This document shows positions 23,539 to 64,000 of a stretch of DNA of 64,000 nt, piece after piece. Source of the stretch: Pavona decussata (lineage: Eukaryota); the NCBI GenBank assembly GCA_977016875.1, contig CDRNST010000035.1, positions 372,001 through 436,000 of the forward strand, read 5' to 3'. Made by a program: the position numbers and the translations under genes. Within the stretch, counting starts at the first letter, position 1; each line of letters starts with the position of its first letter. The notes under the pieces were generated by a model. That model ran no database searches. It saw only the letters and a list, made by a program, of their open reading frames with translations, and was not told the origin of the DNA.

Positions 23539-26500
23539 TCACCGCCATTGTGAAAAAGAAACACCGCTGGGACTTCTGTAAAGAGACAAATGACAAATTT
23601 AAACGACAGAAAAGTATTTCAACACACATAAAAAAGCGGAAAAAGTACTGAATTACATGAAAACTGTGGCGACCACTCGCTGCCGTAAAAATCGCCCTTT
23701 AACGTTTATCGTTCGAATGAAGTGGGATTCTTTGAAACTTACTGTGAGCCTCCACCAAACGAGCCAAAGGAAGGAGATTGCTGCTGCTGCTGCGGCTGAA
23801 TACTCCCAAACCCTTGAGTCGGGGACTGACCAGCTAGGGCTCCAAACGAAGGAACATTAGCCTGAGATGCCAAGGAACCAAACGTTGGACTACCTGAAGA
23901 TCTGTGGAGGTAGACGACAACTTCACACGCTATTTTTTTAGGACTGAACAGTCGTGGTAAGACAGGCATTTTTAAGGTAGCCCTGGCTCTTTAGGCTAGT
24001 AACATACAAATCTTGTGAAGAAATGTGGTGTTATATTTTAAGCCTGGTTGTGGTCTTCGCACACTGGCAAGCGATTTATTGTCTACCGTTTGAAAGCCAC
24101 TGGTGTGTGGAGGAGGCAGCCCTTTCTGACCGTTAATTTCAAGTCTTCTGCAAGTTCCCTGTGATTTTGCAATACAAATTTTCTGCCAAAACTGTTATTT
24201 ACTGTATATCAATTCGCTAATCAAACGGTACTCTAACCGTAAACAGTAATTGCACTTAGAAGGGAATGACCAGACTTTTGGGGGGATAAAGCCCACACCT
24301 ACTGCATCATCAAATGACAAAGGATATAATGATTGTAACCAATAATTATAGATTTAGTACCACTATTGTTGTAAGTTATTTCTGAAAAACCGCTTTAGGG
24401 ATTGAGCTAAAAGGTTATATTGGATTGTATTGCACAAACGGAAATGTTGCGCTCTGAGGCTATTTACATCTCTTGAAGTTAAATCCTGATATTTTGGTAT
24501 CATAAAAATATGAAAAATAACCGTCTTTTTCAACTAAGAATTGAGGGTCCGACACGTATTTAATGAGTGACAGAACTGTACTGCTATAGTAAAAAAGGTT
24601 AAGATTAACTTCTTTTCATGAGTTAATAATTCAGGAAGAGAAAACAAAGGAAAACACTACAATGGTTCGATCTTAATTATCATAAAATTCGGTGAACTTT
24701 TGCTTTCAATTGCCCCAAAAATTCATAATGGTTTTAGAAACTATATCAACGCTCGAAACAGTGCTTCAACCGATTTCTAAACAACTCGAAGGTGGTTTAA
24801 AAAAACTCGGTTGTACCTGTTTTTTTTTTTTTTCAACTCATTTTTCGGTGTTTGGAAATCGGATGAAAGACTCTTTCGCGTGTTTGATATATTACTTTCT
24901 AATGGTGTATTTAAAGATTTAAAGACGTTTGTGAAAGAAACTTACTGTCCAAATCCTCCCGCACTTCCTGCACCAAAGATCCTAAAAAAATTAAAAGCAC
25001 CTACAATTTATAAACAAAGAAGCGGATTTGCTAAAAATGAAAGAAAAAACATACATTATGGGAAGTTTTCAAGGAAATTGCTGTTGAAACTATCATAAAC
25101 TTTTACTGCCTTGATATTGCAACGTTTATAAAATGCCCACAAAATGGGCGCTTATTGGTAGGGCCAGATGAACAACATAGGACTCCAAGTTATTACAAAC
25201 AAATATTCACTGAAGAATCTACATTTTCACTATCAGGATCGGCAGTTTCCAGACAAACACTTCGAAAATGATAACAAAAGCTCCTGACACTCGCTGGACG
25301 CCTTTGCTCTGTAATGAGGTTGCCACTATTGCATGGAGCAACAGCGTGCACCTGATTGTACAACGTACCCCCCAGATGGAGTGGCGCCCGGGCCACCTTG
25401 AGGAGAGCTGCCAAATGCTGGGGCGCCTCCAAATGAAGGACTTGAACCAAATGACGGTGCACCACCAAACGCTGAAGCTCCGGCTGAGGGTGAACCAAAA
25501 GGCTGCGATGAACCGAACCCTGAACTGCCGCCTGAAAATCACAAGGTAAGCTTTATCAACAATTAATGGAGAGCAAACTCAGAATGTCCTAAATTGTGTT
25601 CATTGCAGTGGCGTTTCTTCGATGAAATGAAACAAAATGAAAAAAAAATGGTTGACATTAACATTCCAAGTCGTCCGAGACGGGAATGGGTTGGCCTACA
25701 TGTATGACTTCATTTACAACTTATTGACCTGTTCTAAGTGATTATAATCCTGATTGGCACGCGAGCATTAAAACCAAATTGTAAATAACTTCTAGTCAAC
25801 TACACTACTTACCAGGAGATGATGCAGTACCGAAGCCAAAACCAGAAGACAACACACTTCCGCCTTGTGTACTGAATGATCCTCCAGTGAACCCGCCTGA
25901 AGACTGGGACCCAAATCCTGATTGAGAAAACGGGCCACTGCCAAGAGAACTCTGGAAAACAAACAAGAACAGCATATTGATGATTGTGAAACAGCCCTTA
26001 AACCAACAATAGTGGAACAGTATAACAACCATGGTTAAATTCTAAAATGCATGAAAGAGGCTTAAAATTGACGTTACTAAAAAGCACTTTTTTTAGGTGG
26101 CTACCGCCATTCACATTTTTATTTTTTCCTATGAGTACTTTGGTACTCTCGAGATGTAAACGGTGCAATGTACAAACCTTGAATATATCATCTCCAGACT
26201 TCCCACCAAACAATGACGGCTCTAACATGGGGAAACAAAAAAAGAAATAAACAATGTCACTTACTGGCACAGCAATTCCAGAATGCATTGACTACCATGC
26301 TGAGTGGGTTTTGGACAAATAGTTTGAAAGACGAATTGGTGGGCAGGGTTAAAACTAGAAAACTAGAGAACAAACTAGGTAAGAGAGTCAACTATTTTTA
26401 AGATGCTTCCTAAGTTGCTGCCACGCTGTCACTCCCTGCAGAAAATCATGATACAAAAGTTTAAGTACATAAAGGCAAAACAAGAACTAACGTGTGGTTG

Positions 26501-62200: not shown

Positions 62201-64000
62201 TGTACTTTACTCATTAGCAACTAGACCTTGAAGAGTAGTAAGGCAATGTGTGTATATACAGTATCAATTCCATAACGATTTGATTCTTGTAGTGGATTAA
62301 CCATAGTACATAGCTGGTCTAAGATACGATCTGAAAGTAGAGTGGCATCATCAACTTCCACTGTGGGTAATTCTTCATCCACTGGTGTAGGTGCAGCTGG
62401 ATCAAATCCATACCACTCTAAATCATCAACAGCTGGCTCCGCCTCAGCGATTTCTGCTACCGCAGTCAAAGTACGGTTTCTGATATCAACCATACCATTG
62501 GACCAGATTCTCTGTGGGCTCCAGTTGTGCTCAGTTCTAAGAGGATGGTTATTCCATGCTGTTTTAAAACTTGTAATAGCTCTGTTTATACGGGGTAGAA
62601 ACACATAATGCAGAGCAGATTTATGAATTGGGTTATCCATATTCAATAAACCATTCTCTTCCATTACCTGGAATGTGTAGTAAAAAATGTGGGCCACACA
62701 ACGAAAGACATCCCGCCAGAGCCGTTCGATTCTCTGGTTGTGGGTTGATGTGCCTGCCAAGTAGCTTCCCCTGTTTGGGCCTCTTCTTTGTTCCATTTCT
62801 TGCCAGACACCAACATTTTCCCCACCTTGATCTGTCCGGACCCTTCACGGAACGCCAAATGACTGGATGGCATCTACGAACAATTCTTTCACTGTCTCAC
62901 TGCGATTATTGCTTGAGCAGTGAAGATAAGTGATTAAACGTGAATAGCCATCAATAGCTCCATGTATAACAAATCCCCTAGATACCAGAGAATGATGGCC
63001 ATCTAGGTGCCACAAGCTGTTTGGGCCAGGCACACAGTATGCACGTCGAGAGATGGTAATGGCCCATCGAATTCTTGCATTTCTTGGATCAATTCTTGCT
63101 AGACTCTTATGAATGCGATCTCGCTGGATTCTGATTCCCTGAGAGCGAAAATATCCACGAATCATGGATGATCCAACAAAGCAACCAGTACCATGTTCTT
63201 GCATAAAGTTCCTAACTTTTTGGTCCACCTCATCATCACTAATTTCGTCAAATTTTGACAAATGCTCTAGTCCAAACTCAGCCACTCTGCGCTGAATTGT
63301 CCAGCGTGATACCAATAACATTCGAGCAATTTCATTCCAGTTAAAACCCAGTGACCTCAGCTCAATTAGAGTTTCCTCATGTATGTATATCAAACTTGGG
63401 TCTTCCTGGATGCCCGGTTTTAACACTTTCTGGTAAATTAAATGATAAAACTGCTACTTGAGAGCATCTCGAGCGACAAGGAAAATCACCATGACGAATA
63501 TAGTCCCAGTACATTAGCTGGAGATTGTGTGCAATTTCTGACAATATAGCAGCAACTGAATGTGAATGATGGACATGAGGAAGCACGTTTCGTAAAGCTT
63601 GGACAGCATTTTCAAACCTTTCCAGAAGAGTTTCGTCTAAGGAATAGTTTCTAGTAAAGTTTGACGCTTTCAATTGCTCATAATCTAAGACTAGCTGTTC
63701 CAAATCTATAAAAAACAAGTCCCATCCGAGCTCCGCCGGCCGCCATCTTCTATTTCCCAGCGATGGATTTTTTCGGTCCCAACCTCCCCCGACCATAGCC
63801 AGTCGCTCGTCCCCAAATTGCTGAACAAATTTTGTGTTGTTGAAGTTGAGACTCTGTTCGATGTTGGTTTTGAAGGTGATTCGTTGTTGAAGACGAGAGG
63901 AATTGTTGTTGGTGTTGACTTACTTTCGTTGTTGGTTATTGTATTTGCCGTTGAAGTTGGACGGATTTTATTGTTGATCTAGAAAGAAAATGTTGAACTG
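59290..64000 (-). mobile_element. IS3EU-like DNA transposon with long inverted arms (right end beyond the window)
   Basis: 59356-59813 is inverted at 63543-64000; candidate TATGG terminus at 59290; integrase-core transposase pseudogene inside. Confidence 0.75.
62207..63796 (-). pseudogene. Integrase-core (DDE, IS3/IS481-related) transposase pseudogene
   Basis: GRPKFDI-HEETL..LRSLGFNW.EIARMLLVSRWTIQRR (HTH), [46 protein letters not shown]. Lesions: +4 frameshift at ~63382, nonsense codon at 62845-62847, probable +5 frameshift at ~62257. True start uncertain. Confidence 0.9.

Follow-up and report, generated by a model that had tools for sequence, protein, structure and literature searches.

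The stretch analyzed here (the window) comprises 64,000 nucleotides of the coral Pavona decussata, positions 372,001 to 436,000 of contig CDRNST010000035.1 (C35) in a 602-Mb assembly, and positions are given in window coordinates unless a contig is named. It carries the gene for Nup214, whose body holds a dense field of one palindromic eight-letter word, TACATGTA, together with the seven-letter words TACAGTA and TACTGTA (jointly TACWGTA, with W being A or T). The coding open reading frames (ORFs) of Nup214 span 27,576–44,388, and the gene runs from right to left; the assignment is based on a weak Pfam match to Beta-prop_NUP159_NUP214, with relatives at 64–80% identity carrying PF16755. The ratio of observed to expected CpG (CpG o/e) is 0.85 at 1–25.6 kb, 0.37 at 25.6–50.1 kb, 0.93 in a nested transposable element (TE) at 50.1–56.7 kb, and 0.50 at 56.7–64 kb, and a CpG-rich bin lies outside the window at ~66–70 kb, near the presumed 5′ end of Nup214. 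The sharp switch from 0.85 to 0.37 at the 3′ end of the gene, as well as the CpG-rich bin, resembles the mosaic gene-body methylation of invertebrates; however, CpG depletion alone does not generate the word, and the word field of this coral is an added layer. The features on which the following account draws are listed below.

1–25,600, no strand: CpG-normal DNA (o/e 0.85) without TACATGTA, including a 769-amino acid (aa) ORF at 19,598–21,907 (plus strand)
25,697–61,440, no strand: TACATGTA field with 30 TACAGTA/TACTGTA words, in the CpG-depleted body of the Nup214 gene
27,576–28,820, 29,176–30,132, 31,995–32,606 and 42,847–43,404, minus strand: ORFs of phenylalanine-glycine (FG)-rich exons of Nup214
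28,532–28,539, minus strand reading ..STCTS..: the sole TACATGTA within a Nup214 coding exon; a +6 length would be a multiple of three
35,179–35,198, no strand: tandem array of three overlapping TACATGTA words (period 6, 3.3 units)
38,176–38,198, no strand: chain TA-CA-TA-CATG-TA-CATG-TA-CTG-TA, scar-like units with shared TAs; the paralogue at 41,847 has TACACGTA where the chain has TACATGTA
39,983–40,198, no strand: five TACAGTA words in 216 bp, by word count, with local contexts that are all different
41,336–41,354, no strand: mixed chain TA-CATG-TA-CAG-TA-CATG-TA, within a 34-bp indel relative to the duplicate copy
43,936–44,388, minus strand: ORF for the end of the Nup214 beta-propeller
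50,097–56,747, no strand: young nested TE insertion (CpG o/e 0.93)

A word field tied to CpG-depleted DNA

The word TACATGTA occurs 40 times in the window, always at 25,697–61,440, against 1.5 ± 1.1 copies (maximum 5) in dinucleotide-preserving shuffles and 2.5 copies under an order-3 Markov model trained on field sequence, and an unbiased 8-mer scan returned it as the top over-represented 8-mer of the region. The enrichment is confined to this exact word among the TAC-NN-GTA, xACATGTy and TxCATGyA variants (40 versus at most 4 each), the one-letter variants that were counted reach 5 copies at most, and no other 8-bp palindrome stands out (runner-up, 8). No copy was present at 1–25,696, and the nested TE at 50,097–56,747 contains neither TACATGTA nor TACWGTA, with approximately 8 copies of TACATGTA expected there at the density of the field. 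About 30 of the 40 copies lie in single-copy DNA with unrelated flanks, and a local duplication of 3.7–3.9 kb accounts for about 8. With tandem and duplicate copies removed, the outer bases of the word follow the distribution seen over all 2,186 TA sites of the field (chi-square p 0.16), and no preferred spacing or flank for it was found within the field. TACAGTA and TACTGTA together number 38 in the window versus 7.8 expected, with 30 of them in the CpG-poor part; their density is 0.96/kb in CpG-poor and 0.17/kb in CpG-normal DNA, against a median low/high-CpG ratio of 1.05 for their class, and TACWGTA ranks first of 360 same-composition CpG-free 7-mers in CpG-poor DNA once sub-words of TACATGTA are excluded. 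An earlier reading of this stretch from its letters (the sequence-only reading) had noted, by eye, more than 30 copies of TACATGTA between 25.7 and 61.5 kb, three in tandem at ~35179–35198, none in 1–25 kb or in the nested TE, and many TACAGTA/TACTGTA words, all of which the counts bear out; for TACATGTA and TACWGTA the signal is in fact stronger than that reading described. It had also included TACATA/TATGTA in the signal; these words are enriched only twofold and rank 19 of 60, and they do not form a distinct signal.

Two repeat-type candidates for the word were rejected. A dispersed repeat, such as a short interspersed element (SINE) or a miniature inverted-repeat transposable element (MITE), does not fit flanks that share nothing beyond AT-richness and motif DNA that is single-copy in the assembly. 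A (TACATG)n microsatellite does not fit a window with one 3.3-unit array and a genome with 1,572 doubles (~2.5% of 62,960 copies) and 182 16-mers.

Across the whole genome, TACATGTA is present in 62,960 copies versus 23,613 for its reversed control word ATGTACAT, and the earlier claim that the motifs are restricted to the Nup214 locus therefore fails. Clusters occur on both C1 and C35: in the first 930 kb of C1, the copies have a variance/mean of 3.2, with dense patches at 620–680 and 860–880 kb, and a smaller field lies at C35:306–314 kb. Over 194 kb of C35, the number of copies per 4-kb bin falls with CpG o/e (Spearman −0.65, p 4e-7). In the sampled DNA, the density is 1.24/kb at CpG o/e <0.35, a class dominated by Nup214 (outside it there are only 9 kb of low-CpG DNA, with 2 copies), followed by 0.50/kb at 0.35–0.5, 0.26/kb at 0.5–0.7, 0.087/kb at 0.7–0.9 and 0.062/kb at >0.9. 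On the whole-genome word counts, the C1 listing and the 194 kb of C35, which are the basis of all genome-wide statements made here, the TACATGTA field is a genome-wide class tied to CpG-depleted DNA, and Nup214 is one example of many. This CpG-depleted DNA presumably corresponds to historically methylated gene bodies, which would link the words to methylation.

Insertion at TA, neutral decay and resident elements

The right end of the window holds a TE with words of its own, for which other copies in the genome allow gained letters to be recognized.

59,290–64,000, no strand: integrase-type element with ~520-bp terminal inverted repeats, extending to ~64,070 past the window; other copies are 92–97% identical
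59,813–59,820, no strand: TACATGTA at the inner edge of the left repeat of the element, common to other copies and thus inherited, not made here
62,257–62,263, no strand: TACAGTA formed by a private 5-bp CAGTA insertion at TA, missing from six informative copies and copying no neighboring letters; frame break
63,382–63,387, no strand: TATGTA formed by a private 4-bp insertion that is also a perfect TGTA tandem duplication, its origin being ambiguous; frame break

The gene of this element at 62.2–63.4 kb had been taken for a pseudogene of a Tc1/mariner-type transposase. No DDE_3/mariner transposase domain was found in it; its protein instead matches the integrase core domains rva_4 (E 7e-39 and 4e-26) and rve of Pfam, and approximately 25–39 copies or fragments of the element are found in the genome at 91–98% identity. 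The element served only as a target in which insertions happened. Compared with 6–8 other copies, both frame breaks of its gene are private insertions of the window copy. The claim that both match excision footprints thus holds for the event at 62,257, where TACAGTA is a derived +5 insertion at TA and not a product of slippage, and is weakened for the +4 event at 63,382 by the tandem duplication. Most other private 4–6-bp insertions in the element family are tandem duplications, for example CATG to CATGCATG. This private 4-bp duplication was seen three times in different copies (L001, L007), and L001 carries it in each of its terminal repeats, at mirrored places. Within the fields, repeat families were not numerous enough, or had diverged too far, to act as insertion reporters.

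A unit of ~3.7–3.9 kb is tandemly duplicated at 38,160–45,600, in the intron/exon region of Nup214, with conserved blocks that are 94–98% identical. The duplicates differ at 5.4% of non-motif positions, from which 36% of 8-mers are predicted to have changed, and 3 of 9 TACATGTA words have done so. Approximately 29 excess one-mismatch neighbors stand beside the 40 exact copies, giving a mean age near 0.09 substitutions per site. Therefore, TACATGTA is made by mutation and then decays neutrally. In reads from four runs, which include a relative at ~3% divergence, two other individuals of the species showed no indels at motif sites among the rows listed, which fits this mean age. In another coral, an orthologous 3.7-kb contig containing the same exon (74% protein identity) has a CpG o/e of 0.21 and a single TACATGTA versus ~10 here; from this comparison the words look lineage-specific, as expected of scars. 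No allelic contigs of the Nup214 locus were found in the assembly, a protein search with the FG exon found no relatives by which the word at 28,532 could be polarized, and no relatives turned up in the searched collection for an intronic ORF that stays open across three motif copies. The motif copies present in long ORFs are in proteins that evolve fast.

The form of the words is TA + CA/TG + TA and TA + C(A/T)G + TA, that is, letters of a transposon end between two TAs, and the added letters are the terminal letters of TA-flanked elements in the same genome. These are a young Tc1-like family and the elements with CAGT ends. At least 150 DDE_3 transposase matches were found in the genome, many with uninterrupted frames of 357 or 384 aa. 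The young Tc1-like family has ~90 copies that are 99.2–99.4% identical, every one bounded by TA/CA...TG/TA (slashes mark the element ends), and this copy number means that it cannot be the main source of scars. Elements with CAG...CTG ends, for which the sequence-only reading had suggested a search, do exist: a scan of a 360-kb sample gave four small TA-flanked elements of the form TA/CAGT...ACTG/TA with 28–33-bp inverted ends, all in the 194 kb of C35, two of which lie at window coordinates ~65.3–66.8 and ~67.0–68.9 kb, immediately upstream of Nup214. Genome-wide, the two types of end seen in these four elements number 4,507 and 669, versus 32 and 168 for the reversed controls. All four CAGT-ended elements are in CpG-normal or CpG-rich DNA, and the resident young Tc1-like copies have a median flank CpG o/e of 0.90, with one of about 16 elements in CpG-poor DNA. 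A single TACATGTA lies in the 44.6 kb that flank resident Tc1 copies, DNA that is mostly CpG-normal; this is about the compositional expectation.

Some further arrangements of these elements were observed. Tc1-type (DDE_3) frames of 315–384 aa recur head to tail every ~2.4–3.7 kb, 6 to 13 or more times, as tandem arrays and not as dispersed copies (C114:2,216,986–2,261,607; C347:105,863–131,602; C511:1,721–27,696; C82:1,935,887–1,949,202; C294:1,288,159–1,300,645). Facing TACAGTSGAACCT termini lie 60–180 bp apart at C2:2,628,215–2,628,287, C1:995,404–995,585 and C2:3,084,707–3,084,888; such close-facing pairs are tiny elements with internal deletions, of the kind expected from abortive gap repair following excision. 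In CpG-normal DNA of the window, TACAGTACTGTA at 9,644–9,655 equals TA + CAGT + ACTG + TA, with four letters for each CAGT-type end, and may be a longer scar or an end-to-end remnant.

Probable excision scars and competing explanations

The best explanation of TACATGTA and TACWGTA, and one that we consider reasonably probable, is that they are scars from the excision of Tc1-like elements that target TA; the field records mutations and is not a functional element. When a Tc1/mariner element excises, the duplicated TA remains at the donor flanks together with 3′ overhangs of element end letters, from which nonhomologous end joining makes footprints (PMC7827188). In the coral, cut-and-paste elements of Tc1/mariner type with CA(G)...(C)TG ends would insert at TA and later excise, and end-joining repair would retain the duplicated TA with two or three terminal letters from each element side, yielding TA-CATG-TA (+6) or TA-C(A/T)G-TA (+5), after which the scars would drift and decay as neutral sequence. 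The +6 route may keep both 2-nucleotide (nt) overhangs or pair the 3-nt overhangs of CAT...ATG ends through AT, either of which would give TACATGTA; the +6 words presumably arose in the same way as the polarized +5 event. The chains at 38,176 and 41,336 are what re-use of the scars' own TAs would give, and the 2.5% of doubles is similar in magnitude to what random re-use of existing TAs by scars would produce.

The coral words are like the known footprints of Tc1/mariner elements (TAC(A/T)GTA of Sleeping Beauty [SB]; the Tc1 and Tc3 scars of Caenorhabditis elegans) in sitting at TA targets and in adding terminal letters of the element, which derive from 3′ overhangs joined by end joining (PMC7827188). 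TACAGTA/TACTGTA is the canonical SB-type product, and one coral case is a derived +5. In contrast, the dominant coral word is a +6, TA-CATG-TA, whereas the 3-nt stagger gives +5 and Tc1 typically gives +4 (PMC13148408). Also unlike the coral field, each of the known footprints represents one event at an experimental or mutant locus; the coral scars would number in the tens of thousands, in kilobase-scale fields and in CpG-depleted DNA only. A literature search combining the word and footprints returned nothing relevant. As far as searched, the transposon footprint is known as a kind, and its scale, the +6 form and the confinement to CpG-depleted gene bodies have not been described.

Several observations weigh against an origin by excision. 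No TACATGTA site could be polarized as a +6 insertion in these data, the motif DNA being single-copy. At motif sites the duplicates differ by substitution, in one case of the CpG type (TACACGTA versus TACATGTA). Such differences are expected of old scars given neutral decay, yet they show that substitution can create or remove individual copies. The dominant +6 does not have the textbook length of a scar, which is +4 for Tc1 (78% of somatic scars; PMC13148408) and +5 for SB and mariner (PMC7827188), and the +4 words TACATA/TATGTA are not specifically enriched. More than one TACATGTA per kb is a very high density if each needs both an insertion and an excision, and the low-CpG class from which the highest density comes is, as stated, mostly Nup214. 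TACWGTA shows no excess genome-wide (119,197 versus 117,609 for its reversed control, which has a higher baseline in CpG-normal DNA of 0.24/kb versus 0.17/kb). One young Tc1-like copy (L034/L035, C6:4,981,131–4,983,288) does lie in CpG-poor DNA (flank o/e 0.15–0.28), and its flanks (3 kb) hold no TACATGTA and three TACWGTA words. The young family prefers T-A-W/TA targets, and 2 of 30 ends have G at −1, a mild departure from the motif flanks (p 0.015). Furthermore, the reported effect of methylation on excision held for elements of the inverted repeat/direct repeat (IR/DR) type and not for Tc1 itself (PMC3680223), and it would extend to the coral elements if these are of the IR/DR type. Taken with these points, the earlier identification of the words as Tc1/mariner excision footprints stands for their form, for the matching elements and for one polarized +5 event, and falls short for the +6 word, which is unpolarized and of unusual length. 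That reading had also named CpG-type substitutions and a uniform genome-wide density as signs of another origin; the former was seen at one motif copy, and the latter was not, with densities falling from 1.24/kb to 0.062/kb across CpG classes.

An unlikely alternative, with some observations on its side, is another sequence-specific insertional or templated mutation process in methylated or transcribed chromatin that writes CATG or CAG between TAs without a transposon, such as a repair-polymerase or quasi-palindrome mechanism or slippage that seeds (TACATG)n. The +6 word is not a canonical transposon scar (PMC13148408, PMC7827188), and it is a perfect palindrome. Moreover, short duplications of CATG to CATGCATG recur in TE copies, tandem doubles and triples are present, and the +4 insertion at 63,382 amounts to a simple tandem duplication. 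Against this, no further palindrome or hexamer unit is enriched, and slippage fails to explain a population of mostly isolated 1.33-unit words with 2.5% doubles and 182 16-mers. The CAGTA insertion at 62,257 copies nothing adjacent to it, and the words consist of TA joined to end letters of elements that the genome contains in abundance.

Selection on a functional cis-element in gene bodies, either a palindromic homeodomain site (of the Iroquois type, with an ACATGT core) or an intronic RNA signal, would account for the extreme sequence specificity, the palindromic form and the confinement to one gene class. We regard it as very improbable in view of the decay described above, which proceeds between duplicates at the neutral rate (3 of 9 changed versus 36% expected) and leaves an excess cloud of one-mismatch relatives. 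An equally CpG-poor orthologous stretch of Nup214 in another coral has 1 copy versus ~10, copies also occur within a TE and an exon, and neither spacing nor flank is favored.

CA and TG are decay products of CG. That the words simply arise from CpG decay together with an AT-rich composition in methylated DNA, with TACACGTA, TACGTGTA and TACGCGTA as precursors, is scarcely credible and already contradicted on magnitude. The field does coincide exactly with CpG-depleted DNA, and a transition of precisely this kind separates one copy from its paralogue. Yet when 32 kb of CpG-normal DNA from the window is taken through complete decay in simulation, at most 0.3 TACATGTA result, the three precursors are at background (0–2 copies), the Markov model of the field expects 2.5, the median low/high-CpG ratio among CpG-free words of equal composition is 1.05, and the CpG-poor orthologue of the other coral lacks a field.

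A possible role of gene-body methylation, and neighboring features

If the words are excision scars, their confinement to CpG-poor DNA calls for a cause, and the one we infer is a difference in excision. Elements in methylated chromatin would most likely excise far more often, leaving scars, and those in unmethylated DNA would stay. For SB, Frog Prince and Minos, excision and transposition increase more than 20-fold when the donor is CpG-methylated, with Tc1, Himar1 and Hsmar1 unaffected (PMC3680223), and SB re-inserts near its donor, ~80% of events falling within 3 Mb and several within 200 kb (PMC3271037). Together with the mostly CpG-normal position of the resident young copies, these two properties suggest that elements entering methylated gene bodies leave fast and repeatedly, scarring them, and that those in unmethylated DNA persist. 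Enhanced excision of IR/DR elements would thus explain both the scars in methylated gene bodies and the mostly CpG-normal position of the residents, although the known system consists of plasmid donors in cultured vertebrate cells and methylation in the coral is deduced from CpG depletion. The earlier proposal that insertion is targeted to a transcribed gene body is unsupported, given where the resident young copies mostly lie, and faster excision out of methylated DNA is no less likely than gene-body-targeted insertion. Preferential insertion into methylated chromatin, or a different choice of repair pathway there, is also possible.

A bolder proposal, which we offer tentatively and regard as doubtful, is that gene-body methylation or its chromatin expels cut-and-paste elements, which excise, perhaps re-insert nearby and repeat the cycle until they reach unmethylated DNA; methylated genes would then be 'self-cleaning', and the fields would be the fossil trail of this process. 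Were this true, gene-body methylation would gain a previously unrecognized role in purging DNA transposons. If the words are scars, the genome would preserve a readable ledger of earlier DNA-transposon movements, with tens of thousands of events, entered almost exclusively in methylated gene bodies, and with relative ages given by their decay. The cell-culture finding that methylation boosts the excision of some Tc1/mariner elements would become a force shaping real genomes, and a testable function for invertebrate gene-body methylation would follow. Screens for k-mers or motifs in such genomes would also pick TACATGTA as a false 'regulatory motif'. If the words are not scars, a highly sequence-specific insertion process tied to methylated DNA would need explaining.

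Several other features of the window were observed. The uninterrupted 769-aa ORF at 19,598–21,907 (plus strand), which adjoins Nup214, is serine- and lysine-rich, with an internal repeat of ~80 aa, no Pfam match and no scar words. Within the nested TE, the ORF at 50,445–50,846 (minus strand) matches zf-C17orf113 of Pfam (E 2e-7), a zinc finger frequent in domesticated and transposon-derived proteins. The 5-bp TTAAT at 38,216–38,220 of the reference is lacking in three other runs and, in a fourth, in some of the contigs, and is a segregating small indel that is not of the scar type. A very high-copy SINE/MITE-like repeat lies at 38,489–38,700 and 42,160–42,371; its sampled copies are 73–95% identical, and its summed contig depth is ~1000x that of neighboring DNA in four runs.

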